Shown: piece by piece, positions 45,451 through 61,236 of the stretch
How positions within the stretch are numbered: the first letter of the stretch is position 1
Layout of the letters: each line of letters begins with the position of its first letter
Sequence record: MG592671.1
DNA: 64,000 nt
Strand: one strand, 5' to 3'
Translations under genes and position numbers: made by a program
Notes under the pieces: generated by a model
What the model saw: the letters and a program-made list of their open reading frames with translations, nothing else
Databases searched by the model: none
What the model was told of the DNA's origin: nothing

Positions 45451-45542
45451 GGCGGGTTGGTAGAGTTTGGCTTATTGCACCTGACTTGAAATCAGGCGAA
45501 CCTTAAACGGTTCCGAGGGTTCGAATCCCTCACCCGCTTCCA
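45451..45542 (+). tRNA. tRNA-Ser(UGA)
   Basis: Class II cloverleaf, loop CTTGAAA, CCA; discriminator U. Confidence 0.9.
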
Positions 45543-45544
45543 AT

Positions 45545-45620
45545 GCAGGGATAGCTCAGTAGGTAGAGCACGTGATTGAAAATCACGGTCGCGCCAGTTC
45601 AATTCTGGCTCCTTGCACCA
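45545..45620 (+). tRNA. tRNA-Phe(GAA)
   Basis: 76 nt, loop TTGAAAA, CCA. Confidence 0.92.
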
Positions 45621-45723
45621 ACAGTGCGTACTCCTCTAATACACCTCGGTAATATTACGTTTACGCCTTCTTAATTTGTTAGTCTGTGATGGAAAAGAAA
45701 AATAATCTCAAGGAGATAAAACA

Positions 45724-45930
45724 ATGGCTAAATCCTATGTACAGATCAAGTACCTTACAGTAAGCGAACTTGATAAACTAAATGACAAGCGTTTAGTGGA
45801 AGTGCTAAAAGTTGCTCGTAAACACTTCAAGATTCTTGAAGCTGGTGAATTTACTGTTGACGAAGTTGCGTCAGCTGAAACATACCACAACCAAGTCAAA
45901 GCTATTAGCGAGACTCGTAGTAACGTATAG
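45724..45930 (+). CDS. hypothetical protein
   Basis: SD AAGGAG. Confidence 0.7.
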   Translation: MAKSYVQIKYLTVSELDKLNDKRLVEVLKVARKHFKILEAGEFTVDEVASAETYHNQVKAISETRSNV

Positions 45931-45942
45931 TAATCTACGTAC

Positions 45943-46031
45943 AGGGAATGTTCTTGTCAGCGGTCTCCAAAACCGTCGAGAATAAACAGACTTGTGGTGC
46001 TCTAGGGGTTCGATTCCTCCATTCCCTGCCA
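45943..46031 (+). tRNA. Atypical tRNA-Trp(CCA) lacking a normal D-arm
   Basis: Acceptor AGGGAAT/ATTCCCT-G-CCA, loop CTCCAAA, T-loop TTCGATT; only ~10 nt where the D-arm should be. Confidence 0.65.
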
Positions 46032-46047
46032 AATTTTATAAGATATT

Positions 46048-46269
46048 ATGAAAAGTTATAAAAGTAATTGCTTATTTGAAGCAATAAAACTACGATTTAA
46101 AATACCTAACAGTTCATTTAAAATGAAGTGGACAGAACAAAGTTGGATATTCCCTCATTGTTATGTTGAGACCGAAACGCATAAGATTGCTTTTGTTGGA
46201 TTATATTCCGATGAACCACCTTTAGCCCATTTTTGGTACATAGGTAGAATAAAAAGTAGATTGAAATAA
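46048..46269 (+). CDS. hypothetical protein
   Basis: ORF between tRNAs. Confidence 0.6.
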   Translation: MKSYKSNCLFEAIKLRFKIPNSSFKMKWTEQSWIFPHCYVETETHKIAFVGLYSDEPPLAHFWYIGRIKSRLK

Positions 46270-46272
46270 TTC

Positions 46273-46362
46273 GGAGGCATGGCAGAGCGGCTTATCGCGC
46301 ACCCCTGCTAAGGGTGTAGACCTTAATAGGTCTCGTTGGTTCAAATCCAACTGCCTCCGCCA
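46273..46362 (+). tRNA. tRNA-Ser(GCU)
   Basis: Class II, loop CTGCTAA, G73-CCA. Confidence 0.93.
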
Positions 46363-46364
46363 AT

Positions 46365-46453
46365 AGAGAGATGACTGAGTGGCTTAAGGTACTCGCTTGG
46401 AAAGCGAGAGGAGGCATAGCTTCCCGCAGGTTCGAATCCTGTTCTCTCTGCCA
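46365..46453 (+). tRNA. tRNA-Ser(GGA)
   Basis: Class II, loop TTGGAAA, G73-CCA. Confidence 0.93.
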
Positions 46454-46478
46454 ATATATTTTTAAACAAGGACTTAAT

Positions 46479-46724
46479 ATGTTCGTAGTAATTTTTGGTC
46501 AACCAGGTTGCCCATTCTGCACAAAAGCAGTAGATCTAGCTGAAAAATATAAAACAGAGCGCGATGATTTCAACTATCGTTATGTTGATATCAAAGCAGA
46601 AGGCATTAGCAAAGCTGATCTTTCAAAAACAGTAGGTGAAGAAGTGACCACAGTGCCACAAATCTTCATTGATCAAACACCAATTGGTGGTTACACGCAA
46701 TTTGAAGCATACAATTTAGACTAG
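46479..46724 (+). CDS. grxA: Glutaredoxin 1
   Basis: GQPGCPFC, TVPQIF, IGGY; start corrected to ATG46479. Confidence 0.93.
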   Translation: MFVVIFGQPGCPFCTKAVDLAEKYKTERDDFNYRYVDIKAEGISKADLSKTVGEEVTTVPQIFIDQTPIGGYTQFEAYNLD

Positions 46725-46738
46725 GAGTAAAACAGCAA

Positions 46739-47194
46739 GTGGAACACGTCATTACGTTCCTTCAGGATTACCTGTCCTGGATCATGAACGGTGTATCGAT
46801 GGTGGCAGCATATTGTCTTTCTAATCAGAGAGCAGTCGTTGGTCGATACTTAGGTGCAACAGGTGCATCTCTTTTTATATTATACGGCGTGGTGACAAAT
46901 CAGCCTGCTTTTGTGGTAGCTGATATCATCTTCCTGTACATTTACATTAGTGCAGTTTTGAAGTTCAATAAGAAACGAGATTCTTATCGTGAAAAAGCAG
47001 CGGATGATGAAGAAACTATTGCTCAAATGCGAAAGATCATCAAACGTGCTAATACAATTGAATTAGAAATTCTTGAAACACGTATTGGTAAGCAAACGAA
47101 AAAGAAACTTGAACTCCGTAAATCATTACAGAAGCAACTTTATATTCTGTTGAAGATTGGCGAAAAGATTGAAAATGACATCGAGGACGAGTAA
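46739..47194 (+). CDS. Membrane protein with a C-terminal coiled coil
   Basis: Three short TM segments; SD AGGAG. Confidence 0.65.
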   Translation: MEHVITFLQDYLSWIMNGVSMVAAYCLSNQRAVVGRYLGATGASLFILYGVVTNQPAFVVADIIFLYIYISAVLKFNKKRDSYREKAADDEETIAQMRKIIKRANTIELEILETRIGKQTKKKLELRKSLQKQLYILLKIGEKIENDIEDE

Positions 47195-47208
47195 AATCGT
47201 CCTTTTTT
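47184..47208 (+). terminator. Terminator
   Basis: AGGACGA-GTAAAA-TCGTCCTTTTTT. Confidence 0.75.
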
Positions 47209-47223
47209 GTGACTAAAATTTAT

Positions 47224-47342
47224 GGGCTCATGGCGAAGCGGGATCGCGATTTAGTTTAGTACCTAGATCTAGGAGTACGCATCCGCAACACTCTTAACCG
47301 GCATGATCGGTGACGTTGGTTCGAATCCAACTGAGTCCACTA
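47224..47342 (+). ncRNA. tRNA-like RNA with G3.U70/A73 and a replaced anticodon arm
   Basis: GGGCTCA/TGAGTCC-A-CTA, D-arm and T-arm present. Confidence 0.65.
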
Positions 47343-47349
47343 TTAACTT

Positions 47350-47568
47350 GTCGAGCTGGAAAACAAAGCCTCTGAAACTGTAAAGCCTCCACAAGGTTAA
47401 CAGATTGTAGAAGATTCGTTATACTAAGAGAATCAGGGGAGATAATGTTTGGTCAGAGTAACAAATAGATATGGAATATTAGAGGAAAAGCTAGTAGACA
47501 GTGGAACTACTTGCAGAACTCTTTTAAGACGTTGAAACTACGGGGTTCGATTCCTCGTCTCGGCACAA
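47350..47568 (+). ncRNA. 219-nt RNA with tRNA-like termini
   Basis: GTCGAG/CTCGGC-A-CAA; T-arm CGGGG-TTCGATT-CCTCG. Confidence 0.55.
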
Positions 47569-47572
47569 AAAA

Positions 47573-47664
47573 GGAATACAATCGAAAAAGGGCTTGTAGT
47601 AGGCACTGAGACCCAGAAGCCCTGAAATACCCATTCAGATCGTCTGTAAGCAGTGCTGTATTCC
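47573..47664 (+). ncRNA. 92-nt pseudoknotted RNA element
   Basis: GGAATACA/TGTATTCC, AGGGCTT/AAGCCCT, GCACTG/CAGTGC. Confidence 0.55.
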
Positions 47665-47674
47665 TATTAACTAT

Positions 47675-47969
47675 GCCCCTGATGTTCAATACTTGAATAA
47701 GGGAATCCCTGTAAGGCTGGAGTCACCCGGAGAGACAGATTACGATACTATATCACTCACTAATACACTGGATCCAGATCGCGTGTTCGTGACTGTGACG
47801 GTAGTATAGTACGTGTCGTAAAGAGATGATTCCTGTGATACGGTATAAGCTGGTGTAGAACTCGCTCGTGAAGGTAGACTGAAAGCGGACCAAGTGTGAC
47901 TACTTGGCAAAATCCAGGAGTATGTTGAGACTATGAGTTGGGTGGTTCGATTCCACGCCAGGGGCAACA
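47675..47969 (+). ncRNA. ~295-nt RNA with tRNA-like termini
   Basis: GCCCCTG/CAGGGGC-A, T-arm GTGG-TTCGATT-CCAC, internal helices. Confidence 0.65.
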
Positions 47970-48032
47970 ATTCAGGATAACGCAAACGCATTATCCTCAT
48001 TAATATGTGTTAATATAATACAACAACATTAT

Positions 48033-48103
48033 CCCCGTTCCCTAACGTGACACTACAGAAATAATAGAGTTGCTGGACGTTCGAATCGTCAAGCGGGGTC
48101 TAA
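48033..48103 (+). pseudogene. Degenerate tRNA-like element
   Basis: CCCCGTT/AGCGGGG and GACG-TTCGAAT-CGTC only. Confidence 0.45.
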
Positions 48104-48131
48104 TCATCCTTAATATCAAAGGTACTTCATA

Positions 48132-48869
48132 ATGGATAATATCCTTCTGTTCGCTGGACACAACACGTCAAAACGTGGCGGCATGGCCGATTTCGTTGCT
48201 GCATTTAGTTCTGTTTATGCAGCACAAAAGTTTATTGAAAACGAGAACACCCAACACACCCTGCTTGACACACTCCCAAGTTTACAGTGGGCACATTTGT
48301 ATAACACAAATGAAGGTCGTATTGTGCAGAAAGGCAAGATCGAGATCTGGGGTCGTGAAGATATTGGAAATGAAGATGATGAAGAGACTAAGTTCACATG
48401 GTCACCGTGTGATGATGAAAAGGATCTTCAACCTCTAATGGTTCAAGCAGCTAACGACAATAGTGCTCGTGAAAAGGCCGAAGAAGAACGTATTGCTAAA
48501 GAAGAAGCAAAACTTGCTGCTGAACAGGCTATTGAAGATTCGGTTGCTAATACTATCATTCGCGTAGTTCCCTTTGATCTAGGCGTTATTGACTCTGTAG
48601 TTGATGAAATTGAAGTTCAATTAGAGTTTGCATTTAATCTTGAAGCAATGAAGCAAGAAGGTGAAATCACCAATCGACACGTAAAAGTATTGACTATTTC
48701 ATTTTCAGATGAAGATAAAGCTCTACTTGAGAGTATGGGTGGTCCTAGTGCGCCAGGTCATTGGGTAAGTAAAGCTCAGCAGCATTTTGATGACGAAATG
48801 ATCATGGCATTTTTTGAAAACGAAGTTCTAACCGAGGACGAAGTTAGCTCAGTAGCAGAGGTAGCTTAA
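48132..48869 (+). CDS. Acidic hypothetical protein
   Basis: 245-aa ORF. Confidence 0.8.
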   Translation: MDNILLFAGHNTSKRGGMADFVAAFSSVYAAQKFIENENTQHTLLDTLPSLQWAHLYNTNEGRIVQKGKIEIWGREDIGNEDDEETKFTWSPCDDEKDLQPLMVQAANDNSAREKAEEERIAKEEAKLAAEQAIEDSVANTIIRVVPFDLGVIDSVVDEIEVQLEFAFNLEAMKQEGEITNRHVKVLTISFSDEDKALLESMGGPSAPGHWVSKAQQHFDDEMIMAFFENEVLTEDEVSSVAEVA

Positions 48870-49237
48870 TGGCTGACTTTACTTATGAAGATGCTATAGC
48901 ATCACCTGAGGGCACTACCTTTTGGGTATGTGCTCACTCTCGTAGGGATGTCACTAAGAAAGCACAGCGTTATCAAGAACCACAGCAAGCAGTTGTGGTA
49001 AGTGACGGTGCAGTAATTCGTGGATCGAATTTTCTTGTCCTTCTTAATAACAAGGGCAATATGACCAAGAAGAAAGTCATTCGCACATCTACTTATATCT
49101 ATGATGATAAGGATGAGTGTGCAGCTAGATTCAATGCGTTAAGTATTGAGATTCGAGATCGCTATATGGATTACTCTCGATACGTGGCAGAACAAGCTAC
49201 AGCGCTGAGCAAGCTAATTGACAAATACAGCAAATAA
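48869..49237 (+). CDS. hypothetical protein
   Basis: TAATG coupling. Confidence 0.75.
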   Translation: MADFTYEDAIASPEGTTFWVCAHSRRDVTKKAQRYQEPQQAVVVSDGAVIRGSNFLVLLNNKGNMTKKKVIRTSTYIYDDKDECAARFNALSIEIRDRYMDYSRYVAEQATALSKLIDKYSK

Positions 49238-49460
49238 CGGGATATACTGAAAAGGGCATCTCCGAAGCTATCATCCTAGGAAATGTGGCGATCATTGTTG
49301 TCGGTTATTAGGTATATTCAAGTCTACTCCGAAAGCACGGGCTGACGCGGGAGCGTTGGGCGAAGTAGAGGTTCAATTCCTCTAGCACACTTGATAACAA
49401 ATCGGGAGAGTGTGTTCTGGGTGAAATATTAGGGTGCGAGTCCCTTAAGTAGACGCCCGT
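49237..49460 (+). ncRNA. 224-nt structured RNA with a permuted tRNA-like domain
   Basis: T-arm followed by GCACACT/AGTGTGT hairpin; closed by GTCTACT/AGTAGAC and ACGGG/CCCGT. Confidence 0.6.
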
Positions 49461-49485
49461 AATTAACTACATGGAAGGATCAAAT

Positions 49486-49929
49486 ATGGCAAAGGTAATT
49501 GTCTCTACAGAACGAGAAACTATTTCGGAATACTCTTCTTCAGAGAAATATGGCGATTGGAGCTCAGACCACACTTATCGAGTTACTGGAGTGCGCTTGT
49601 GCTCATCGATAGATGATGCATGGGAAGAAACTTTCGAACTAGGTGATGTTAAAGCTGGCGACGAAGTTCATGTCTTATCTATTGTATACGGAACTGGCGA
49701 CAGTTTTGGCAAATCATCTGGTAATGGCGAAGTGGTAATGGTTTACAAGAGCCGTGCCTTAGCTGAGCAGGCATACAGTATGTATGATGAAAAGTCTGGC
49801 GATTACTCGATCAAACTCCCGTTTGAAACTCCTAAAGGCACTGAATTCCGCGCTATTAGCAACCCAGCAGCTGGATATTTTGAGTGCTTGGAAAGTCTAG
49901 ATCTAGAAACATTCATTGTCGGAAACTAA
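49486..49929 (+). CDS. hypothetical protein
   Basis: SD GGAAGGA. Confidence 0.75.
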   Translation: MAKVIVSTERETISEYSSSEKYGDWSSDHTYRVTGVRLCSSIDDAWEETFELGDVKAGDEVHVLSIVYGTGDSFGKSSGNGEVVMVYKSRALAEQAYSMYDEKSGDYSIKLPFETPKGTEFRAISNPAAGYFECLESLDLETFIVGN

Positions 49930-49938
49930 CAATTTACT

Positions 49939-50853
49939 CTAATGTTTTATCCCTAGTTTTTCAAGTAACACCTGTTTGACATTATCATCGTATCTAATAC
50001 GTAATATATTTCCGAGTTCTTCAGCTTTGGCAGTTTTCACTGTATCTCGATGTTGAGCTCTATTAAATCCATCTGTATCTTTATGAAAGATTGGGACAAA
50101 TTCATAGTGCTGTTTGCCATCATACTCAACAAATAGATTATAATCAGGCAGATAGAAATCATAGTAATACTTACAATCAACATCGTTAACTCTGTATTGC
50201 TGAATATAAGTAATATTATTATCATCTAAGATCTTTTTAGTTTCAAGCTCACCTTTAGAAGTTCTACAATTAGGACAGCCTGATTTCATACTTATATGGG
50301 CACTGCCTTGTTGATAAAAAATTCCATGTTTAGAGCAAATAATAGGATGTCTATCATCATATGCGCTATAATCAATCAGTGAATAATCATACAAATCACC
50401 ATGAACATCTTTAGCTTTTTGAATAAATTCTTCTTGTGTTAGAGTATTTGATTTATTTCTTGATAGTTGCCCACAGACTTGACAACTGTGTTTGCCGTTG
50501 ATGAGATTATCAGGAGTCATTTCGAATTCTCCATGTTCAGAGCAGATTATCACAACTTTTGTGTGGGCTCCTTTATATACAACCTTACTAAGATCATATT
50601 TTTCACCATGAATCTTTTTGAAGTTCTCTATAAATTGTTCTTGCGTGATACTATTATTAGGTATAAAACAATCAGGACAGGAACCAGTTCTAGCACCTAA
50701 ATGATTTCTAGCCATACAAGAAAATTCTCCATGATCTGGGCATATTATAGTTACGGCACTTTGTCTGTTTTTGAAATTTTCTATTAACGAGTAATCAAAT
50801 CTATCGCCAAATTTACTTTTGGCTTTATTGATGAACTTTTCTAAATTAGTCAT
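49939..50853 (-). mobile_element. Free-standing homing endonuclease (CPxHGEF repeats plus DUF559-like domain)
   Basis: Three ICxxHGxF...CxxC repeats; YDFYL, VEYDGKQHY; antisense insertion. Confidence 0.8.
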
Positions 50854-50899
50854 GGTATAATCCTTATGTTATATCATATTTATAAAAAGGAGTGAGCCC

Positions 50900-51736
50900 G
50901 TGGGCAGCTGGTATGAAACTGACTTTCTTACAAATCTACCTATTCAAGACGATGATGAAGTGATGGTGTTCTTCTTAGAGCAACAACATGGATTAGTTCC
51001 TACAAGTTCTATAACTTATTCACATGATATATATCGACCTATAGGTATTCCTATTCAAGGGTGGTATGACGATTACGGTCGTTATAAACTTAATGAGGGT
51101 GATATAGTATATGATCATATGCTAGAACATCTACGTTCAAAAGTTATGCCTATGGAAGAAGGTTCTAATAGATATCACGAAAAAGCAGTAATCCCAGAAA
51201 CTATGACATGGGAAAACGTTTTCGAGAATATCCATGAAGAACGGCTAAAGACTCACTCGCACTACAACGGTTCTAAGAATCACATTGTTGAAGTAGCAAT
51301 TCATAGAAGCATTTATGATATGATGTCAGAAGAATGCACTACTTGGAAAGGCACTCAAACTTGGAACGATGAATACCAAGATCTAAAGGCCAAAATAGCT
51401 AAAGCTCGTGAAGATATTGATAACGGAACTCCTGAGAGAATTGCTAGTGCTATTATGCGAATGGAAATAGGAGAAATCCTAGGCAGGTTCGCACCATTTG
51501 ATAGTGTTTCTTTCAAAGACATGTATTATGCAGCAGTTGATGATGGGCAAGAAGATCATTATCTAAGAGCACTTGCTAAAATGAAAGTATTCAATACAAA
51601 CTTATCCATGTTGCGTAAATCTTGGATGCCACAAGCTGGCACAGGATCACAGGATGCTGAATTTGAATTACACATAAAACTAAATGGTGTAGTAACAATG
51701 TTTGCTCATAATAAGAAGAGGAGTTACGATGAATAA
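50900..51736 (+). CDS. hypothetical protein
   Basis: GTG start; SD AAGGAG. Confidence 0.75.
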   Translation: MGSWYETDFLTNLPIQDDDEVMVFFLEQQHGLVPTSSITYSHDIYRPIGIPIQGWYDDYGRYKLNEGDIVYDHMLEHLRSKVMPMEEGSNRYHEKAVIPETMTWENVFENIHEERLKTHSHYNGSKNHIVEVAIHRSIYDMMSEECTTWKGTQTWNDEYQDLKAKIAKAREDIDNGTPERIASAIMRMEIGEILGRFAPFDSVSFKDMYYAAVDDGQEDHYLRALAKMKVFNTNLSMLRKSWMPQAGTGSQDAEFELHIKLNGVVTMFAHNKKRSYDE

Positions 51737-51983
51737 TCCCGGCTATCATGTTACCCTTATAGATAAAGGTTCACTAGGTGAGCTTTCAAAGATCTTAGAG
51801 GAAATCAACGAAGCTATTGATGCGGAAAAACAGGGTTGTAAAATTATGACCCTTATTGAACTATCTGATATGATAGGAGCAACAAAGCGCTACCTTGAAA
51901 AACATCATCCTGATATAACACTTGACGATTTGCTAACAATGGCAGATATTACACGTCGCGCATTTGAGAACGGACACAGATAA
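51729..51983 (+). CDS. MazG-like all-alpha pyrophosphatase-like protein
   Basis: SKILEE..E..DA and IELSDMIGA acidic pattern. Confidence 0.5.
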   Translation: MNNPGYHVTLIDKGSLGELSKILEEINEAIDAEKQGCKIMTLIELSDMIGATKRYLEKHHPDITLDDLLTMADITRRAFENGHR

Positions 51984-52540
51984 TGAATATAGACACATCG
52001 CTTATTTTTCAGGCCATAAAACACTACGAAGAGTATGGCTATAATATGGTCACTGTTCCTATGTTAGTAGATGAAGAAGCATCTAGGCTAACAAAGCCTA
52101 AGGGATGCAAAGATCTATATCATAAAGATAAAGTCTACGTAGCATCTGCTGAACAGAGTTTTATCCAGTTGTATAACGAAGGTGAGCTAATGACAGGAAA
52201 ATATATGGCATTAACTCCTTGTTATAGAGATGAACCTGAATTAGATGATACACACTTCAATATCTTTTTGAAGCTAGAACTAATCAAAGTTTATCGAGAA
52301 GGCTATAAACCAGGTGCCTCTGTTGTGTTAGATGATGCATATGATTTCTTTAAGCCATTAGCAAAATACAACACAAAACTTGTTAGTTTTGGAAATAATA
52401 ATCACGATATAGAAATAAATGGACTGGAAGTAGGCTCGTATGGATATCGTCAGTTCTCTGATGGTACATGGTACGTTTACGGAACAGGAATAGCTGAGCC
52501 AAGACTTAGTTACGCATTAGGGAAATCCAATGACGAATGA
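51983..52540 (+). CDS. Stand-alone class II aminoacyl-tRNA synthetase-like catalytic core
   Basis: VASAEQ, motif 2 PCYRDE..H..F-KLE, IEINGLEVGS, motif 3 GTGIAEPRL; no anticodon-binding domain. Confidence 0.7.
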   Translation: MNIDTSLIFQAIKHYEEYGYNMVTVPMLVDEEASRLTKPKGCKDLYHKDKVYVASAEQSFIQLYNEGELMTGKYMALTPCYRDEPELDDTHFNIFLKLELIKVYREGYKPGASVVLDDAYDFFKPLAKYNTKLVSFGNNNHDIEINGLEVGSYGYRQFSDGTWYVYGTGIAEPRLSYALGKSNDE

Positions 52541-52763
52541 TGAATACTTTGAATACCTGCATGATCTACAAAAGCAGGGATATATGATATACGATAATTC
52601 TCGTATGGTTCAGGACTTTATCTCAATTGAAAAAATTGATGGAGTATGGAGGTATTTTTATCACGAAGACACTGAAGGTGAAATAGACTGTGATATGGAT
52701 GGATGCTTTACTGTATACAAGGATGTCACTGCTGAAGTAAAGCAATCAACTACAATGTTATAA
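52530..52763 (+). CDS. hypothetical protein
   Basis: ORF. Confidence 0.6.
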   Translation: MTNDEYFEYLHDLQKQGYMIYDNSRMVQDFISIEKIDGVWRYFYHEDTEGEIDCDMDGCFTVYKDVTAEVKQSTTML

Positions 52764-52797
52764 TATAGTAATAATAAAATATTAGTAGAGAAATATT

Positions 52798-53817
52798 ATG
52801 AAACATTATACTTATTGGATTATAGATACTGTAAATGCTATGTATTACCACGGTGTTCATAGCGATAATGATCCAGAAAATATCCATCACTACTCTGGGT
52901 CTTCTAAGTCACTGACATCAGCTATTCAACAATACGGAATATCAAATTTTATAAAGAGAGTTGAGCGTTATTTTGATACTAGGGAAGCAGCTAATAAGTG
53001 GGAAGCAACAGTACATAAGCGATTAGATGTAAAAAACCATAATAAATTTTATAACAATAATAATGCATCAGAAGATTTTACTGCCTACAATAAAGTTACA
53101 GTTAGAGATACAAGCGGTAATATATTTTCGGTAGATAAAAATGACAAAAGATATATTAGTGGTGAACTTGTTCATAATAATTTAGGTAAGCACATTGTAA
53201 TTGATTCAAATGGTGATGCGTTTAAAATATTAGCTAGTGATGAAAGATTTGTAAGTGGGGAGCTAAAAGACAGATTATCAGGAAAAGTTATCGTCAAAGA
53301 CGAAAACGATAATAATATTTTAGTAGAAACTACAGATACAAAATATTTAAGAGGTGAATACACCCACATTAATGCTGGTGTGGTAACAGTTAAGGATACA
53401 AACGGAAATACTATGCGGGTTTCAACAGACGATCCTAGATATATTTCAGGAGAGCTTGTTCATCTAACCACAGGGCGTGTGACTGTAAAAGATAAAGCAG
53501 GAAATCACATACAAGTAGACATTGATGATCCAAGAATTGATAATGGCGAGTTTACATATCTACAAGTTGGTAAAGTTCCAGTCAAAGATGAGAATGGTAC
53601 TATATTCCAAGTTGATGCCACTGACCCTAGATATATTTCAGGGGAATTAACACATCATCTTAAGGGGATTTCCAATAGTCACAAAGATAGAATTTGGATA
53701 ACTAATCCTATATTAAAGAAGAACAAGCGCGTTCTTAAAGATGATTTGGATTCTTGGTTACTGAAATCTGATTGGACTAAAGGTCGTAAAACTTACGCAA
53801 AAATAAAGGAATTATAA
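52798..53817 (+). mobile_element. GIY-YIG (Seg-like) homing endonuclease with six ~32-aa repeats
   Basis: HYTYWI...YYHGVH...YSGS; repeats VKD--G----V---DPRY-SGEL; own promoter at 52756. Confidence 0.8.
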
Positions 53818-55067
53818 TGTCTAAAGAAATAAAGAATGTAATAGTACAGCATTATGCTGGTAGCATATCTTATGGCACATCACTTCCTACGAGTGATACT
53901 GATATCCGCGGTATCTTCTGTGCTGGTGAAGAAAATATACGTACGCCGTTCTTTCCTATCCGTGAACAAACACTAGAAGATGAAGAAGATGGTAAGCTAT
54001 ATGAGCTTAGTAATTTCCTTAAGTTATACACTGATGGTAACCCGAATATCCTAGAATCTCTATGGGTAGATGATAGACACATCATTGAAGGTTCAGAAGC
54101 ATACGATATTCTTACTGAACACAGGCAAACTCTGCTGTCTAAAAAGGTTGCATTCACTTATAGCGGCTACGCTATTTCGCAACTACATCGTATCAAAGGC
54201 CACAACAAGTACATCAATAACCCAGCTAAAGAGACGCCACCACGTCAAATTGACTTTGTGAAGCTAGTTCATAACTTTACAGACAAAAAGATCTTTAAGA
54301 TCAATATGGAAGATATCCAAAACGGATACAGGTTAATACCATACGGTGGTGATTTATTTGGTGTTTATGAATCCCCGGGTTCCCAAACATTCGATCACTT
54401 GTTCACATTGAACACTAATTGTGATGCAGATCTAAGTGGCTTCTACACAAAGACTCGAACATTCACAGATAAGATAGCTGGATTCATTACAGGTAATCCT
54501 GATTTTGGAACACGCAAACTCCCACTGTTCATTGTATCGTTTAACCGTGAAGGTTACAAGAAATCAAAAGAGCATTGGAAATCTTACTGGAGCTGGAAGC
54601 GTAATCGTAACGAAGCACGACGTTTGCTTGAAGAAGAAAACGGATACGATACAAAACACGCTCAACATTTGGTAAGACTGCTGAATATGGCTGAAGAAAT
54701 CCTAACTGATGGTATAGTAAAAGTGTTCCGCCCTGATCGAGAATTATTATTAGATATTCGACATGGTAAGTTCTCTTTTGATGAGCTTATGGAAATGGTT
54801 GAAGGTAAGGATGAATACATCCGTGGAGAGTTGTACAAGAAATCTCCGCTACCAAAAGCACCTGATATCAAACTAGCTTCTAAAGTTCTCATAGATGCTC
54901 AAGATTGTTTCTGGAAAGAGCCAACAAAAGAAAAGCGTATTCAGAAAGCCAAAGATCGCATGTTTGATCGTCATCAAAAAGAAGAAGATCGCCGTGAAGC
55001 ACGTTTCTGTGAAAACATGGAACGACTACAAGAAAATCTGAAAGGTGATGATAATGAATCAGAATAG
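53817..55067 (+). CDS. RlaP-like (Nuc-transf) Pol-beta nucleotidyltransferase
   Basis: AGSISYGTSLPTSDTDIRGIF, GNPNILE, YDTKHAQHLVRL. Confidence 0.85.
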   Translation: MSKEIKNVIVQHYAGSISYGTSLPTSDTDIRGIFCAGEENIRTPFFPIREQTLEDEEDGKLYELSNFLKLYTDGNPNILESLWVDDRHIIEGSEAYDILTEHRQTLLSKKVAFTYSGYAISQLHRIKGHNKYINNPAKETPPRQIDFVKLVHNFTDKKIFKINMEDIQNGYRLIPYGGDLFGVYESPGSQTFDHLFTLNTNCDADLSGFYTKTRTFTDKIAGFITGNPDFGTRKLPLFIVSFNREGYKKSKEHWKSYWSWKRNRNEARRLLEEENGYDTKHAQHLVRLLNMAEEILTDGIVKVFRPDRELLLDIRHGKFSFDELMEMVEGKDEYIRGELYKKSPLPKAPDIKLASKVLIDAQDCFWKEPTKEKRIQKAKDRMFDRHQKEEDRREARFCENMERLQENLKGDDNESE

Positions 55068-55431
55068 TAGAGATTCACTTAGGAGTACTCTTAATGAGTA
55101 CTTCAGACTCTGTAATTCCTGTGAACAAGCAGGTATTGACATTGATGATGTCCATAATGACATTACAAAAACAGTCACTCAAGAAGGTGGTCCACAGAAG
55201 CTAGAAGATTTTCTAGTGAATACTGTTTGCTGTCCTAGCTGTGAAGGCGAGGCTGGCGAGAGTGTTGCTGATGGACACGACTGTTGGGGAAAAACAGAGT
55301 TCAGTTTTATCCCTTGTTTCAAATGTGACGGTAAAGGCTTTTTACCAGCTGATTATAAAGAACAAGAGAAGAACGAACGACGTAAAATGTACATACAGCT
55401 TCGTGAAGAATTTGGACACGAAGATATTTAA
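55054..55431 (+). CDS. Protein with a DnaJ-type CxxCxG zinc finger
   Basis: CPSCEG, CFKCDGKG. Confidence 0.7.
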   Translation: MNQNSRDSLRSTLNEYFRLCNSCEQAGIDIDDVHNDITKTVTQEGGPQKLEDFLVNTVCCPSCEGEAGESVADGHDCWGKTEFSFIPCFKCDGKGFLPADYKEQEKNERRKMYIQLREEFGHEDI

Positions 55432-55464
55432 TGTAATAAAGTCATAAAAATATGTTATAACATA
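55432..55464 (+). promoter_or_regulatory. Phage promoter variant, palindromic
   Basis: TGTAATA-N14-TGTTATAAC; TATGTTATAACATA palindrome. Confidence 0.6.
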
Positions 55465-55519
55465 TAGTAAGCAGACAGGCTGCTAACTAAAACTTATAAC
55501 ATATTCAAAAGAGGCTACT

Positions 55520-56077
55520 ATGTCAAAAGCTAAAAAGGCTGCAGAGGCTACTAGTAAAGCAACAAAAGGCGCTGTGAAAGGTGTCGGTAAAGGTTTATTA
55601 GGTGGACTCCAGTCAATCTGGAAATTCGGCGGTAAGTGGTTGTTACTAGCGAACGCATTCTCGTTCTTATGCGTTGCGGGAATTTATAACTGGATTGCAC
55701 CAGAGTATACAGTTGTTGGATACTTCCAAAATGCAATACAAAGTGGCGATCCACTATCGAATATGGTAGGTATGTCAATTGTAACGTTGCTCTTATTTGG
55801 CGCAATTGGCTATATGGCTAATAACACTAAGCGATCTTTAGGTTGGATCGGGTTAATCTTTATGTCAACACTCATCGGTCTTGTTGGTTTTTGGATGTTC
55901 ACACTTGGCACTTTTGATGGCGCGAGTACTGCATTCCTAGCAACTATTGCACAGATAGGTGTTTCTTTTGTGTTAGCTTTCGGCCTAGTGTACGCTAAAA
56001 TCGATAAGATTATAACCGGTCGTGTCAATACTGACTCCTACGATGTGGGCGGTGATGACGATGACGATGATCGATAA
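55520..56077 (+). CDS. Four-TM membrane protein
   Basis: Hydrophobic helices; acidic tail. Confidence 0.75.
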   Translation: MSKAKKAAEATSKATKGAVKGVGKGLLGGLQSIWKFGGKWLLLANAFSFLCVAGIYNWIAPEYTVVGYFQNAIQSGDPLSNMVGMSIVTLLLFGAIGYMANNTKRSLGWIGLIFMSTLIGLVGFWMFTLGTFDGASTAFLATIAQIGVSFVLAFGLVYAKIDKIITGRVNTDSYDVGGDDDDDDR

Positions 56078-56088
56078 TTGATCACTAA

Positions 56089-56111
56089 AGGGGAGGACTT
56101 GTCCTCCCCCT
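56089..56111 (+). terminator. GC-rich hairpin
   Basis: GGGGAGGAC/GTCCTCCCC. Confidence 0.6.
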
Positions 56112-56137
56112 ATTAACTTAATGTACGAGATTTAAAA

Positions 56138-56563
56138 ATGTCAAAATTAATTACTAACCTAAATAGTGATAACTTCGATTTTGAGGATATCCTGTACTTA
56201 AAAACCCGTTTAAAATTCAAGTTCAAAAATGAACCTGAAGTAAATGTAGACCTTAGTTTCTACCCTCATGATCGAGATTATGGATTCACAAAACGTTTCA
56301 AAAATTCATCCAAATGGGAAGAATATATGAGTATTCTTCGTAAAGCTAAAAACATTCTCAAAGAAGGACTAGTTGAAAATCTAGAACTTGAAACATACTC
56401 AACTGGTTATTACGCTGTTGATTCTGAGCATCGAACAATCTCACGTAAAGGAATGAGCGCAGTGATTAATAGCGAATGGAACGAACGTTATCGTATTGAT
56501 ACGCCAATTGAATCTGCGGAAGAAGTAATTTTGTGGACTAAAATGGTTCTTTTAGGCAAATAA
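56138..56563 (+). CDS. hypothetical protein
   Basis: ORF. Confidence 0.7.
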   Translation: MSKLITNLNSDNFDFEDILYLKTRLKFKFKNEPEVNVDLSFYPHDRDYGFTKRFKNSSKWEEYMSILRKAKNILKEGLVENLELETYSTGYYAVDSEHRTISRKGMSAVINSEWNERYRIDTPIESAEEVILWTKMVLLGK

Positions 56564-56571
56564 AGATTTAA

Positions 56572-56665
56572 ACACATGACAACAGAGTTATTTGGTTCAA
56601 ATCCAGGCTTGGCGGGTAAGACTGCATTGAAGCTTATTATTGGTATAAAGCACTACGTTATGTGT
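56572..56665 (+). ncRNA. 94-nt circularly permuted tRNA mimic (YrlA-like topology)
   Basis: Terminal stem ACACATGAC/GTTATGTGT; the T-arm precedes the D-arm. Confidence 0.55.
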
Positions 56666-56694
56666 CATTAACTTATAATATAACGAGCGTTTAA

Positions 56695-57117
56695 ATGTTT
56701 TGGAATGAAAATAAAAAGTGCGATACGTCTACAGATAATAATGTACTGCCAAAATATCGTAATCCAGATAATGAATTATACGGAACGTACGTTGTTGTTA
56801 GACCAAATATGTCAATAGACGATCTCGTTGCAATCCAAGATTGGGTTAAAGAGCATCCTAATTTGACACTAGTAACAATGCCAGTTGCTGACATCCTTGC
56901 TAATGCAAAAAGAAATGGCCAAGCACACGTATGTATTGATACTATTGGTAATGTTTCATCTGACATGAATCCCCATAAAGAGTTTCGCGAACTAACGTTA
57001 CATTTAAAGCCTACTGTATATTGGTATAATGTTGAGCCTGCTGTTATTGAGGTTCTAGGCAAGAAGTATGATAAGACTCAATTAGAAGAAGCTCTTAGAA
57101 ATATCGATTCAAAGTAA
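56695..57117 (+). CDS. hypothetical protein
   Basis: ORF. Confidence 0.7.
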   Translation: MFWNENKKCDTSTDNNVLPKYRNPDNELYGTYVVVRPNMSIDDLVAIQDWVKEHPNLTLVTMPVADILANAKRNGQAHVCIDTIGNVSSDMNPHKEFRELTLHLKPTVYWYNVEPAVIEVLGKKYDKTQLEEALRNIDSK

Positions 57118-57132
57118 CGCCGGAGGCAATGA

Positions 57133-57606
57133 ATGCAAGAGATCGAGCGTAAGTTTTTACCAGCACCTGGTGCAGTAATCCCGTTTACTTCAGATAATGA
57201 AGAAATCATCCAAATGTACATCCATGAAGAAGGCGAAGATACTGTATGTCGTTTACGTCTTATTGATGGCCACAAAGCGTTAATCACTCAGAAAGACAAA
57301 AGTCTAGATGGCGGGTTCTCATGTAATGAGCTTGAATCTCGTATCCCATATCATATAGGGTTAGTGATGTATGATGCGTGTGGTAATCCGCCTATCATCA
57401 AAGAACGTTATCGTATCCCACACGGCGAGTTAACTTTCGAAGTAGATGTATTTTCTGATCACAATAAAGGCTTAGTCCTTATTGAAATCGAAATGCCTTC
57501 TAAAGATACAGTTATCACGTTACCTGACTGGGTAGGCGAAGAAGTAACTTTAGATCCACGTTATAAAAACGTTAATCTAATAAAAAATCCATATGAACTA
57601 TGGTAA
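57133..57606 (+). CDS. CYTH (triphosphate tunnel metalloenzyme) protein
   Basis: QEIERKFL, RLR, K-RY, EVD-F, IEIE, EEVT-DPRYKN. Confidence 0.9.
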   Translation: MQEIERKFLPAPGAVIPFTSDNEEIIQMYIHEEGEDTVCRLRLIDGHKALITQKDKSLDGGFSCNELESRIPYHIGLVMYDACGNPPIIKERYRIPHGELTFEVDVFSDHNKGLVLIEIEMPSKDTVITLPDWVGEEVTLDPRYKNVNLIKNPYELW

Positions 57607-57612
57607 ACTAAT

Positions 57613-57785
57613 TTAAGCAGCAACTCGTGGTAGGGGAATGTAGACCCGCCTTGGGGAATCTAGGAGAGCTCAGAGGATACTTGCGGCACAGTTGAAGAGT
57701 GTTCCCTAATTCACGGGACGTGTAGCCTTAATGGCGAAGTGTAGACTGTTACTGGTTCAAGTCCAGTCCATCGAACGCTGCTTAA
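57613..57785 (+). ncRNA. tRNA-Leu-like RNA, copy 1 (expanded anticodon domain, extended acceptor)
   Basis: TTAAGCAGC/GCTGCTTAA; T-arm ACTGG-TTCAAGT-CCAGT. Confidence 0.6.
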
Positions 57786-57789
57786 TAAA

Positions 57790-57950
57790 ATGAAATACAG
57801 CAACTCGTTGTGGTGAAACTGGTAGACGCGCCTGGTTGGTACCTGCGTTGACTACCCCTGTAAAAAAAGGGGTCATAGACAATGGGACGCCCGGGATCCT
57901 TGTGAAAGGGGAGTGCAGGTTCGAGTCCTGTCTTCGAACGCTGTGTTCAT
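57790..57950 (+). ncRNA. tRNA-Leu-like RNA, copy 2
   Basis: D-arm GTGGTGAAACTGGTAGACGCG, V-arm, T-arm GCAGG-TTCGAGT-CCTGT; shares terminal motifs with copy 1. Confidence 0.65.
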
Positions 57951-57953
57951 ACT

Positions 57954-58063
57954 TGAGAAGATCATAAACAAAATTTGGTACGCGCTTCAGTTGTGAGGTT
58001 CAATTCCTCGAGGTTCTAGGTGACCAACGTCGACGTAGAGGTTCGAATCCTCCTTTTCAACCA
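57954..58063 (+). ncRNA. 110-nt CCA-ending tRNA-like RNA with two T-loops
   Basis: TGAGAAG/CTTTTCA-A-CCA. Confidence 0.6.
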
Positions 58064-58077
58064 AAAAATAATAGGAT

Positions 58078-58500
58078 ATGAGTATGAATCTTAATGAAAT
58101 CGAATTAGTCCCTAAAACTAAAACATTTTATGTTCGTTATACATCCAATCAGACTGGCGTGTATAAAATTGTTGGTACTTCTGAAGAAACATTTAAAAAT
58201 ATTCTTGTTGAACAGCACACAAAAATGCATAGAGCTAAACGATACGTTGATGAGTATCAAACAGAAGTTAACACTGCTCAACGCAAAATGAATAAACTTC
58301 GTGATGATTGTGATTTCACACATTACTACAATCAAGCACAGGATGATCGTAGTAACTATGAATACTACCTGGATCAACAAATGCCAAAATTCAAAAAGGC
58401 AGAAAAAGAATTCAATTTCTATTTTGATCAGATTAATCCAGATGCTGGCGAGTATATTACGCTGATGATGTGTTATGACGCAGAGTGGGTTTTTGAATGA
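58078..58500 (+). CDS. Coiled-coil hypothetical protein
   Basis: SD AGGA. Confidence 0.7.
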   Translation: MSMNLNEIELVPKTKTFYVRYTSNQTGVYKIVGTSEETFKNILVEQHTKMHRAKRYVDEYQTEVNTAQRKMNKLRDDCDFTHYYNQAQDDRSNYEYYLDQQMPKFKKAEKEFNFYFDQINPDAGEYITLMMCYDAEWVFE

Positions 58501-58577
58501 AAAAAGATTTTGCTGAATTGTTTATAGGGTTTGTTTTAGTTATGTTCGCTATAGCTATATTGCTTGAAGTTACGTAA
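58497..58577 (+). CDS. 26-aa membrane microprotein
   Basis: ATGA coupling; single TM. Confidence 0.5.
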   Translation: MKKDFAELFIGFVLVMFAIAILLEVT

Positions 58578-58647
58578 TGTTACGCAATCGTAATAAAATG
58601 TTATAATAATACATAAGCAGTTAGCAACAAGAGCTGCTTAGTAAATT
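58578..58647 (+). promoter_or_regulatory. Promoter plus 5' leader hairpin (duplicated at 59775-59828)
   Basis: TGTTACG-N14-TGTTATAAT; ATAAGCAGTTAGCAAC. Confidence 0.7.
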
Positions 58648-58723
58648 GGGCCTTTAGCTCAGTGGTTAGAGCAGTCGACTCATAATCGATTGGTCCGGGG
58701 TTCAAGTCCCTGAAGGCCCACCA
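58648..58723 (+). tRNA. tRNA-Ile2(CAU)
   Basis: 76 nt, loop CTCATAA; body resembles enterobacterial ileX rather than Met tRNAs. Confidence 0.85.
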
Positions 58724-58843
58724 AACCTAGATAGATTTCTAGCTTTGCGACCTTGCGAGTTGCGAAGTGCTACTGAAAAGTAGGGGTAAGCTAAACTCGT
58801 ATCAAGTGTTGCCTACTCGGAGCACTTAAATGGAAAAGCGTCA

Positions 58844-59302
58844 ATGTACTTTCCAGCCTGCATGCGAGGATTAACTAGAGAGGTTCTTATGTCTGTCCAA
58901 GCATCTTGGGAAAAAGATTTTGAAGAAAAATATGGCTTTGAGCATATTTTTGAAGAGAACATGATCCAAGCTATAAAGGTTTATTTCCAGTTCGGATTAG
59001 AACCAGGATCTTGTACTACTTGTATTCTTCGTGGTGAACTAGAAGAAGCTCGTGCAAGAGCACATCCTCACTTATTACGATGTGAATTTAATTCAGCTGT
59101 AACTAACATTGAGCGTTTGTATCATACAATTCGTGAGTTGCTTGGTGAAATGGTTCTTGAATATAGCTTAGATCCGAATCACGGATATAAGTTTCCAGGG
59201 ATAAATAATATTCCAGAACATGAACAAGCGATGATATTTTTAGAATCGCCGTTGTTACAGTATTGGATGAAAGAAGCTGCTGACGCGGAGTTTATTAGAT
59301 AG
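58844..59302 (+). CDS. hypothetical protein
   Basis: ORF; start uncertain. Confidence 0.7.
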   Translation: MYFPACMRGLTREVLMSVQASWEKDFEEKYGFEHIFEENMIQAIKVYFQFGLEPGSCTTCILRGELEEARARAHPHLLRCEFNSAVTNIERLYHTIRELLGEMVLEYSLDPNHGYKFPGINNIPEHEQAMIFLESPLLQYWMKEAADAEFIR

Positions 59303-59309
59303 GTTCTAT

Positions 59310-59534
59310 ATGGGCAAGACATATAAGGATACCGGTAAGTATTATCTCGGTAAAAATAAAGATATTCCAAAATATCTAAAAGATAAACTTCCTGAAGGTC
59401 GCTTCGGACATGCTGCTGGGCTTCGTTGGGGAAATTCTCGTAAAAACAGAGCGAAAGATAGTCAAATATTAAATCAGATTGAACGTTCTCAATTAAATCG
59501 AAAAATTGGTAAAGATGATGACTCAAGCTCATAA
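59310..59534 (+). CDS. Small basic protein
   Basis: MGKTYKD; K/R-rich. Confidence 0.65.
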   Translation: MGKTYKDTGKYYLGKNKDIPKYLKDKLPEGRFGHAAGLRWGNSRKNRAKDSQILNQIERSQLNRKIGKDDDSSS

Positions 59535-59787
59535 AACTATTGGTGCTTTAGTTGAACTACACGATGATGTATTTGACTTAGAGGGCTATAAAGATTATTA
59601 TACACACCTTGTTCATTTGCGTGGTGTGGTATTTGAAGTTCAAAATTGTGATGGCGCGCATACGCACGTTATTGATAGAAATAGTGGCGTAGAATTTGGC
59701 CTACATTCAGAGAATTTCAAAACTATTTCAAAAGAAAAGAAAAAAGCTTACGATAAAGCACAACGCTTCGTAAATAAAATGTTATAA
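59515..59787 (+). CDS. hypothetical protein
   Basis: ORF. Confidence 0.65.
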   Translation: MMTQAHKTIGALVELHDDVFDLEGYKDYYTHLVHLRGVVFEVQNCDGAHTHVIDRNSGVEFGLHSENFKTISKEKKKAYDKAQRFVNKML

Positions 59788-59828
59788 TTAATTATAAGCA
59801 GTTAGCAACGTAGACTGCTTGATAAATT

Positions 59829-59916
59829 GGAGGTATTGGGGAGTAGACAAACCCAAGGGACTGTAAATCCCTCGCTTACGAGAGTAGCTACGGTGGTGCA
59901 AATCCATCTACCTCCA
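59829..59916 (+). tRNA. tRNA-Tyr(GUA)
   Basis: Loop CTGTAAA, long V-arm; T-loop TGCAAAT; 3' CAA rather than CCA. Confidence 0.85.
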
Positions 59917-59972
59917 CAAACTGTTGTCATATAAAATGTTATAATAACTATATACTAATATAGGGATTTATA

Positions 59973-60848: not shown

Positions 60849-60858
60849 AATAAATTGT

Positions 60859-60934
60859 TGGGGTATAGCTCAATTGGTAGAGCACCTGGTTTTGATCCAG
60901 GTTGTTGGAGATTCGAGTTCTTCTACCCCAGCCA
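60859..60934 (+). tRNA. tRNA-Gln(UUG)
   Basis: 76 nt, loop TTTTGAT, G73-CCA. Confidence 0.9.
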
Positions 60935-60936
60935 TT

Positions 60937-61011: not shown

Positions 61012-61022
61012 ATTAACAAAAT

Positions 61023-61099: not shown

Positions 61100-61101
61100 A
61101 T

Positions 61102-61186: not shown

Positions 61187-61236
61187 ATCCTGGTGTCACT
61201 TAACCGGACACCTTGACCTCTTCGGAGGTCAAAATC

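Follow-up and report, generated by a model that had tools for sequence, protein, structure and literature searches.

The 64,000-nucleotide (nt) window of sequence record MG592671.1 analysed here carries two overlapping genes, at 51729–51983 (+) and 51983–52540 (+), whose products of 84 and 185 residues we regard with high confidence as one phage enzyme pair: a bare catalytic core derived from seryl-tRNA synthetase (SerRS), and a HisE-like, all-alpha nucleoside triphosphate (NTP) pyrophosphohydrolase. The best overall explanation that we can offer, and one that we put forward tentatively, is that this pair is engaged in the formation of seryl-adenylate (Ser-AMP) and in the transfer of the serine to an RNA end. 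The segment 50900–55067 matches Vibrio phage 2.275.O._10N.286.54.E11 (MG592671.1, 348,911 bp, host Vibrio cyclitrophicus) at 100% identity; the two genes are NVP2275O_308 (84 residues) and NVP2275O_309 (185 residues), both annotated as 'hypothetical protein' in that record. An earlier note, made from the sequence alone, had described them as a MazG-like gene coupled to a minimal class II aminoacyl-tRNA synthetase (aaRS) gene within a tRNA region. Its reading of the two open reading frames (ORFs) and of their TAATG coupling is exact: the stop codon TAA (51981–51983) and the start codon ATG (51983–51985) have one base in common within the overlap at 51981–51985 (+), which reads ...CAG ATA ATG AAT....

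The 185-residue protein and its resemblance to SerRS

The 185-residue protein is assigned firmly to phrog_4806, labelled 'histidyl tRNA synthetase' in PHROGs. It lies below the cut-off of the Pfam model tRNA-synt_2 (E 9.5e-4; 18.8 bits against a cut-off of 25) and does not pass the NCBIfam equivalog TIGR00414 serS (19.6 bits against 301.65). A collection of 5.8 billion proteins yielded 281 homologues, nearly all of 173–200 residues, and 53 of these, 41–55% identical to the query, make up the core alignment to which the statements on conservation below refer; at E ≤ 0.1, tRNA-synt_2 is matched by 30 of the 53 sequences and tRNA-synt_2d by 25.

Eighteen positions of this alignment are invariant, and they can be followed through the class II motifs by comparison with Escherichia coli SerRS (aligned with MAFFT E-INS-i, except where stated). 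The motif 1 region (residues 19–29, GYNMVTVPMLV; 52037–52069 (+)) contains the nearly invariant Pro26, which aligns with Pro196. The counterpart of the SerRS TAE (TxE) loop is the SAEQSF loop (residues 55–60; 52145–52162 (+)), where S55, E57, S59 and F60 are invariant, S55 and E57 aligning with T237 and E239. Motif 2 (residues 79–100, PCYRDE...FLKLEL; 52217–52282 (+)) has a shortened loop and is built on C80-x-R82 and F95-x-K97-x-E99, the counterparts of C266, R268, F287, K289 and E291; all five residues, together with L100, are invariant. A probable Mg2+/ATP site is formed by the strand pair D142 ... E149-x-G-S152-Y-G (52406–52444 (+)), with D142, E149, G151 and G154 invariant: D142 corresponds to D342, and E149xxS152 was matched by eye to E355xxS358, the MAFFT alignment being offset by six residues at this point. 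Motif 3 (residues 165–178, VYGTGIAEPRLSYA; 52475–52516 (+)) has the pattern G167-T168-G169-x-A-x-P173-R174, with T168, G169, P173 and R174 invariant; G390-S391-G392 of the E. coli enzyme lies opposite G167-T168-G169, and R397 opposite R174. The set of SerRS active-site motifs is retained, namely, the TxE loop, motif 2, F-x-K-x-E and the Ser or Thr before the motif 3 arginine, with E-x-x-S added by eye; the catalytic arginines R82 and R174, on whose conservation the earlier note had staked its proposal, are the same in all 53 homologues.

In the Thermus thermophilus SerRS, the glutamate of the F-x-K-x-E strand and the threonine before motif 3 contact the serine hydroxyl, the TxE loop holds the α-amino group, and the E-x-x-S pair holds Mg2+. 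All positions matched to these residues are invariant in the phage family. Since the positions that align with the serine- and ATP-binding motifs of SerRS have been kept, serine is the likely substrate, and we predict that the core probably activates it with ATP to give an enzyme-bound seryl-adenylate.

Structure prediction, one of the checks that had been proposed, gave an AlphaFold2 model of high confidence (predicted local distance difference test score, pLDDT, 95.5; predicted template modelling score, pTM, 0.90; family alignment as input) with the antiparallel β-sheet catalytic fold of the class II aaRSs, and Foldseek matched it to class II aaRS catalytic domains, those of PylRS and SerRS, with E-values of about 1e-9 to 3e-10. 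The protein is indeed a minimal core with motifs 2 and 3: 184 of its 185 residues align to the SerRS catalytic domain (residues 235–470 of human mitochondrial SerRS), and it has no anticodon-binding or other extra domain. When the family profile was compared with the sequences of the PDB, the first eight places all went to SerRS (best E 1.4e-5), with the paired segments VaSAEqSF/IPTAEVPL, tpCyRdE/TPCYRRE and FlKlEL/FDKVEL; the profile was required, as a PDB search with the single 185-residue sequence returned noise only. hhalign to E. coli SerRS gave a probability of 88.8% for residues 15–108 against 185–296. The C-terminal part yielded no hhalign or local pairwise alignment with SerRS, motif 3 being aligned by MAFFT E-INS-i. 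Among the matches listed, SerRS came first, followed by HisRS, PylRS, GlyRS and ProRS, with no EpmA or LysRS structure. The suggested affinity to EpmA, AsnA or BirA-type paralogues has to be given up: by profile, hhalign and structure alignment, the nearest relative of the 185-residue protein is SerRS.

Bacterial-type SerRS (class IIa) has about 430 residues. The E. coli enzyme aligns from about residue 171 on, its N-terminal ~170 residues, which include the coiled-coil arm that binds tRNA, being without a counterpart, and the phage ORF has no N-terminal extension that could hold a tRNA-Ser-binding arm. Relative to SerRS, the phage core also lacks about six residues of the motif 2 loop and the C-terminal tail, has shorter insertions before motif 3, and is accompanied by, or needs, a HisE-like partner. 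The core alignment contains no second invariant cysteine for a zinc site, and net charge and isoelectric point (pI) were uninformative as indicators of RNA binding (family median pI 5.2; E. coli SerRS 5.3). Taken together, these comparisons strongly support the view that the protein is, as judged from its sequence, a SerRS-derived core cut down to the bare active-site domain, with motifs 1–3 and the positions of the ATP-, Mg2+- and serine-binding motifs kept.

A literature search found no functional study of the aaRS-like/HisE-like pair, only genome papers that repeat the annotation; in one of these, the label 'putative seryl-tRNA synthetase', which the family bears in RefSeq and GenBank phage records, is taken at face value and metabolic conclusions are drawn from it (PMC8953757). 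Both this label and that of PHROGs probably overstate the function: neither 'seryl-' nor 'histidyl-tRNA synthetase' is a suitable name, because the tRNA arm is missing and the curated SerRS model is failed, and such database labels probably mislead genome papers.

The 84-residue partner and the pairing of the two genes

The 84-residue protein, whose ORF is read from an ATG, belongs to phrog_6408 (function unknown; E 1e-36). Across 34 sequences of its family, Y6, H7, G14, G17, K21, E24, E25, E28, D31, Q35, E44, D47, D67, T75, R77, F79 and R84 are invariant, and the acidic residues form the EExxE...ExxD signature of all-alpha NTP pyrophosphohydrolases. Moreover, the N-terminal pattern Y-x(3)-[LI]-x(2)-KG-x(6)-K-I-x-EE parallels the Y...KG...K-x-x-EE of HisE (alignment to 2a7w). 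Profile matches all lie below the curated thresholds: Pfam PRA-PH is matched by 21 of the 34 members at E ≤ 0.1 (the best at E 0.0017–0.002, under the gathering score) and Pfam MazG by none, and TIGR03188 hisE gives the 84-residue protein an E-value of 0.0055 (16.9 bits against 42.7). In the AlphaFold2 model (pLDDT 92.8) two short helices follow a helical hairpin, an arrangement suggestive of the short all-alpha fold of HisE (phosphoribosyl-ATP pyrophosphohydrolase, PRA-PH) and MazG, and the acidic motif residues lie on helices 19–34 and 38–59. Ten of the eleven top Foldseek matches are HisE or MazG (1yvw, 7bgn, 7bgm, 7yh5, 3cra, 2yxh and 1y6x), at 21–28% identity and with E-values of only 0.6–3, as can be expected of a helical query of 84 residues.

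On these sequence comparisons, it is strongly supported that the 84-residue protein is HisE-like, that it falls within the all-alpha (MazG) NTP pyrophosphohydrolase superfamily, and that its acidic metal site is intact. 'MazG-like', the earlier description, is right at the level of the superfamily, as the invariant E24, E25, E28, D31, E44 and D47 indicate, and 'HisE-like' is the more precise label. The companion suggestion of a pyrophosphatase does not survive in the sense of an inorganic pyrophosphatase, to which the protein has no match in Pfam, NCBIfam or fold searches; the predicted activity is the release of pyrophosphate from a nucleotide, not the removal of pyrophosphate. Neither by cut-off nor by operon context is the protein HisE proper, there being no his genes near the module. 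In comparison with HisE and MazG it is phage-specific and has the additional invariant residues H7, Q35, D67, T75, R77, F79 and R84, and it is tied to an aaRS-like enzyme, not to histidine biosynthesis. A role as carrier protein was considered and ruled out: no Ser or Cys is kept throughout the family, the catalytic-type motif is, and S46, the one serine that resembles a carrier site, is replaced by Ala or Thr in several homologues.

The association of the two genes was assessed at 80 IMG/VR loci found with the aaRS-like profile and at a further 80 tested loci found with the HisE-like profile. In the former set, the flanks of 76 of the 80 contain a HisE-like gene in the same orientation; of the other four, one lies at a contig end and three have no partner even at relaxed thresholds. 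In the latter, every locus has an aaRS-like gene, the HisE-like gene being upstream of it in 61, downstream in 17 and fused to it in two. Of the 64 loci in which the HisE-like gene comes first, 43 have the two genes abutting or overlapping to within about 30 nt. Single-ORF fusions, always in the order aaRS core then HisE-like domain, are seen in L032, L072 and L091–L093, and in 8 of 249 cluster representatives. With more than 150 independent phage loci showing the same pair, the pairing is far above chance, and that the two genes constitute one conserved phage enzyme pair is strongly supported. The idea of a two-enzyme pathway, already raised in the earlier note, is strengthened by this near-obligate adjacency and by the natural fusions; we found no described precedent for such coupling or fusion of an aaRS-like core to a HisE-like pyrophosphohydrolase. 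All-against-all BLAST clustering of the ORFs revealed no third conserved gene, as no other family occurs in more than nine of 80 loci, and the genes flanking the module in the window recur in at most two other loci.

An exhaustive hidden Markov model search recovered 1,616 cluster representatives (50% identity) of the aaRS-like family, 1,111 of them with E ≤ 1e-30, and their length is tightly conserved; tblastn located the gene in 278 isolate phage genomes. Among the carriers are the E. coli phages of Phapecoctavirus and Justusliebigvirus, Acinetobacter T4-like phages, phiTE/CR3, Caulobacter CcrColossus and CcrPW, Microcystis MaMV, Xanthomonas XacN1 and Bacillus phage G. In 185,579 prokaryotes (one genome per species) there were only ten loci, all with both genes, and the one of these that was inspected, from Mesorhizobium, has phage-family neighbours. 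The family is almost confined to phages. The fused ORFs of L091, L092 and L093 lie on contigs, one of them of 905 kb, that are binned as Candidatus Woesebacteria and Woesearchaeota metagenome-assembled genomes. The family is found widely among large lytic phages that infect very different hosts, laboratory-tractable E. coli phages such as PaulScherrer included, and is currently mislabelled.

Class II cores without anticodon-binding domains have been put to non-canonical uses before, as in EpmA (PoxA/GenX), AsnA, HisZ and the BirA-type paralogues. The EpmA, AsnA and HisZ lineages are LysRS-, AspRS-/AsnRS- and HisRS-like, respectively, whereas the phage core is nearest to SerRS; HisZ, furthermore, has lost its catalytic residues and binds HisG, whereas the catalytic arginines of the phage core are invariant. 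A HisZ/HisG reading, suggested by the label in PHROGs and by the HisE-like nature of the partner, was ruled out, the catalytic residues being intact and no hisG being present. The amino acid:[carrier protein] ligases are likewise SerRS-derived and arm-less and have a small helical protein encoded next to them: they are tRNA-independent enzymes of about 300 residues whose origin is the methanogen-type, zinc-dependent SerRS and whose substrate is a phosphopantetheinyl carrier. Unlike theirs, the phage partner has the catalytic motif of HisE/MazG and lacks a Ser or Cys acceptor that is invariant. Among arm-less class II paralogues, the phage family forms a new and smaller branch that is specific to phages and whose partner is of a new kind. 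EpmA, AsnA, HisZ and the amino acid:[carrier protein] ligases each revealed unexpected biology, and the phage family is smaller than all of them; at ~180 residues it approaches the engineered 'urzymes' in size and would offer a natural test case for the minimum that class II catalysis needs.

The proposed serine acceptor and competing explanations

For the second step of the reaction our best guess at the acceptor is an RNA or tRNA 3' end, or a nucleotide. It is possible, although we would not call it probable, that the pair acts as a complex in a phage tRNA/RNA-maintenance programme, in which serine would pass from Ser-AMP to the ribose hydroxyl of the 3'-terminal adenosine of tRNA or another RNA. 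The RNA end would be recognized without the usual SerRS arm, perhaps assisted in some phages by helix-hairpin-helix or zinc-ribbon additions, and the pyrophosphohydrolase would deal with an NTP that is a substrate, a competitor or a by-product of serine transfer. An RNA or tRNA 3'-ribose is favoured because the second step of the ancestral SerRS is transfer to A76 at a site inside the part of the enzyme that has been kept, because tRNA genes and tRNA-end repair enzymes recur as neighbours, and because some cores have gained nucleic-acid-binding modules.

The placement of the module inside a tRNA region, noted previously, is borne out by ARAGORN and Rfam, which find 12 tRNA-like genes at 45451–61399 on the module's strand: an upstream cluster (45451–47339 (+); Ser-TGA, Phe, Ser-GCT, Ser-GGA and a 116-nt tRNA-like gene, also from GenBank) and a downstream cluster (58648–61399 (+); Met, Tyr, Gln, Asn, Pro, Thr and Glu). 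Elsewhere, tRNA genes lie within 6 kb of the module in 19 of 60 loci, 11 of which have three or more. Also in the window, at 53817–55067 (+), is a gene for an RNA 3'-end nucleotidyltransferase of the RlaP family (PF10127; Pfam RlaP E 6e-11, above cut-off). An RlaP gene accompanies the module on 17 distinct contigs; they represent several lineages and include this window, the CR3/phiTE group, Acinetobacter T4-like phages and huge phages, and in L175 and L176 the RlaP and HisE-like genes directly abut. Damaged RNA 3' ends receive one or two nucleoside monophosphates (NMPs) from RlaP, and a tRNA repaired in this way can be charged again (PMC12776372); the enzyme is common in jumbo phages, alongside RNA ligases and CCA-adding enzymes (PMC7824862). 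Other RNA-related neighbours of the module comprise PolyA_pol+HD proteins (CCA-adding type), a full-length TyrRS, YqeY, Macro, R2K, KptA and a TROVE-like protein. This context favours RNA/tRNA ends or nucleotides over elongation factor P (EF-P), which had been named as a potential target.

A number of considerations weigh against serine transfer to RNA. The activities of both proteins are predictions from sequences and models. Removal of the coiled-coil arm from canonical SerRS abolishes the charging of tRNA-Ser, and the trimming of the motif 2 loop by about six residues argues against ordinary tRNA binding. To our knowledge, the characterized MazG and HisE enzymes all use free nucleotides, which better fits a small-molecule pathway, and a cupin-like domain on the partner in huge phages points to small-molecule chemistry. 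The tRNA and RlaP figures are raw counts, without a genome-wide null. At many loci neither tRNA genes nor RNA-repair genes are close by, and some lie amid genes for ribonucleotide reductase (RNR), NAD salvage, dCMP deaminase or thymidylate kinase. Moreover, no model explains why the serylation of RNA ends should require an NTP pyrophosphohydrolase.

Several of these points are taken up by the main rival, which gives a better account of the obligatory pyrophosphohydrolase and of the cupin fusions, and which we consider unlikely but serious: a free-nucleotide pathway in which a (d)NTP is converted to a (d)NMP and serine is then ligated, driven by ATP, to its base, sugar or phosphate, the serylated nucleotide serving as a precursor, cofactor, inhibitor or signal mimic. 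The pattern would be that of MazZ-PurZ or T4 gp56-gp42, in which a phage NTP pyrophosphohydrolase is joined with an NMP-modifying enzyme; in 2-aminoadenine phages, MazZ provides dGMP for PurZ, which ligates aspartate using a nucleotide triphosphate. The second enzyme differs here, being a class II aaRS core and not a homologue of adenylosuccinate synthetase or thymidylate synthase. Obligate pairing and fusion are compatible with metabolite channelling, cupin-type domains are typical of small-molecule enzymes, and nucleotide or NAD genes do stand beside some modules: in Phapecoctavirus a class III RNR gene overlaps the aaRS-like gene, and other loci have NrdA-like, NMNAT and PnuC genes, NadD-like, NadE and Tmk genes, a dCMP deaminase, RNR small subunit and glutaredoxin genes, or a PurZ-like gene. 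Set against this, the pathway leaves unexplained the helix-hairpin-helix and zinc-ribbon additions and the recurrent context of tRNA, RlaP and CCA-enzyme genes, and the carrier lineages differ widely in DNA chemistry; we know of no modified base in phages that carry the pair, nor of a serylated nucleotide in the well-studied Phapecoctavirus, Acinetobacter T4-like or Caulobacter phages. An improbable alternative is an ordinary, minimalist SerRS that backs up the host enzyme for phage tRNA-Ser, with an independent nucleotide house-cleaning enzyme next door. SerRS ancestry, the conserved active site, the GenBank label and the three tRNA-Ser genes in the window agree with it, and PylRS catalytic domains of about 270 residues function without their N-terminal domain; however, the arm that defines tRNA-Ser recognition is missing, the motif 2 loop is shortened, the serS equivalog model is far from satisfied, and the independence of the two genes is contradicted by their adjacency in 76 of 80 and 80 of 80 loci and by the fusions.

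The remaining alternatives have less in their favour. Arm-less class II paralogues have repeatedly become protein modifiers, as with EpmA on EF-P and the SerRS-like amino acid:[carrier protein] ligases with their adjacent helical carrier of ~80 residues, so that a serine ligase acting on a host protein or on its 84-residue helical neighbour might be envisaged, and one locus has a gene for an R2K ATP-grasp ligase close to the module. We judge it very improbable: the conservation of the partner is that of a HisE/MazG catalytic site, its S46 is replaceable and it has no invariant Cys, and the core is SerRS-like whereas EpmA is LysRS-like (class IIb). Class II aaRSs, SerRS included, make diadenosine tetraphosphate (Ap4A) from the aminoacyl-adenylate, MazG has been linked to stringent-response nucleotides, and both phage enzymes are nucleotide-directed; an alarmone pathway can be drawn from this, in which Ser-AMP would lead to Ap4A/Ap4N or an RNA cap and the partner would trim or degrade these or (p)ppGpp/(p)ppApp, reprogramming the host stress response. 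We judge it very improbable as well: making Ap4A and then cleaving it would be a futile cycle; it has no specific support from gene context and, going by its title, a reference cited in PMC8953757 reports that cyanophage MazG does not hydrolyse magic-spot nucleotides. That the core is the decaying, functionless remnant of a captured SerRS gene, as its length of under half that of SerRS could suggest, is effectively refuted by the conservation data: the 1,616 cluster representatives keep their length within narrow bounds, 18 catalytic-type residues are invariant across sequences 41–55% identical to the 185-residue protein, the predicted fold is confident and compact, and the partner is conserved.

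Serine transfer to an RNA end remains the explanation that we prefer. A more far-reaching formulation we offer as no better than a doubtful one: the pair would be a phage enzyme system of a kind not recognized before, in which the core, as the smallest natural class II aaRS-type ligase (~180 residues) and in obligatory complex with the HisE-like enzyme, would esterify serine to RNA/tRNA 3' ends or to a nucleotide, in the absence of the standard apparatus for tRNA recognition. Its role might be to cap, repair or protect tRNA 3' ends against CCA-attacking host toxins, or to make a new seryl-nucleotide metabolite. With a tRNA end as target, the pair would add a new phage counter-measure to the arms race centred on tRNA; with a nucleotide as target, it would make a new aminoacyl-nucleotide metabolite.

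Accessory domains and neighbouring genes

Both partners have acquired further domains in some lineages. In CcrColossus gp133 (L087:3746-4600), a Caulobacter-phage protein annotated as 'putative RNA polymerase alpha subunit C-terminal domain protein', the aaRS core is in fact joined to a helix-hairpin-helix domain of the RNA_pol_A_CTD type (Pfam 27.3 bits, above the cut-off of 23.8); L049 and L061 are further cases. Several aaRS-like cores have Cys-rich, zinc-ribbon-like tails. On the partner's side, a phrog_4784 domain of ~190 residues precedes the HisE-like domain in huge phages (contigs of 140–580 kb; L050:5184-6014, L056:5052-6002, L081:5013-5978, L066:5156-6001, L048:4782-5606 and L096:5187-6005) and at the Mesorhizobium locus, and a fragment of it lies between the two module genes of L031. 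It has HxH...H motifs and conserved FGLGFIQLK, HDHRY and, later, FH segments, and its position near cysteine dioxygenase, ADO and JmjC in a protein-language/structure atlas is a lead, and only that, towards a cupin-like assignment. In Acinetobacter T4-like phages the HisE-like partner has an extra, uncharacterized C-terminal domain of ~125 residues. A single HisE-like protein (L060:5294-5992) has a C-terminal extension that resembles the part of the RF-1/peptidyl-tRNA-hydrolase domain after GGQ (HLPTG...), at E 9.6e-5, below the Pfam cut-off and with no GGQ visible.

In the window itself, the module is preceded by a 278-residue gene of phrog_5960 (50900–51736 (+); unknown function), which overlaps the 84-residue gene by 8 nt (ATGAATAA); a Shine-Dalgarno-like GGAG (51720–51723 (+)) stands five bases before the ATG of the latter. 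Directly downstream, a 77-residue gene with no family match (52530–52763 (+)) overlaps the 185-residue gene by 11 nt. Because of these successive overlaps all four genes are probably co-translated. The 278-residue gene probably belongs to the same transcription unit as the module and is not a conserved member of it, its homologues occurring near the module in only two other loci (L027 and L080); the 77-residue gene is likewise not conserved with the module. A promoter and terminator scan gave results at or below shuffled expectation.

Genes of homing-endonuclease type stand on either side: one at 52798–53817 (+), between the module and the RlaP gene, is GIY-YIG/SegE-like with repeated C-terminal units, and the other, at 49939–50853 (−), on the strand opposite to the module, is of the DUF723/HNH type. 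Mobile endonucleases seem to have inserted into the tRNA/RNA-repair island. The island includes another triphosphate-handling enzyme, annotated as a CYTH-domain (triphosphate tunnel metalloenzyme) protein, at ~57133–57606 (+) (181133–181606 of the record). The 116-nt tRNA-like gene (47224–47339 (+)) scores 37.8 bits with the Rfam tRNA model and is given in GenBank as 'tRNA-OTHER, anticodon TTA', with no ARAGORN call; its odd length is suggestive of a tRNA mimic, or of a tRNA with an intron or an extra arm.

Neighbourhoods of the module vary between phage lineages. A NAD-reconstitution reading was dropped, as NARP3 consists of PnuC plus NadR and is unrelated. On the 250-kb phage contig of L031, ~6 kb upstream of the module, ARAGORN finds an amber-reading tRNA with anticodon CTA ('tRNA-Pyl'; L031:211-286), which may be a suppressor tRNA. 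In L100, a 125-kb contig from Logan SRR31444226, the module is found amid a Mom-like protein, two DNA methyltransferases, YqeY, a Macro domain, an R2K ATP-grasp ligase and an adenylosuccinate-synthetase (PurZ-like) gene, in what looks like a dense island of DNA modification and translation-factor modification.

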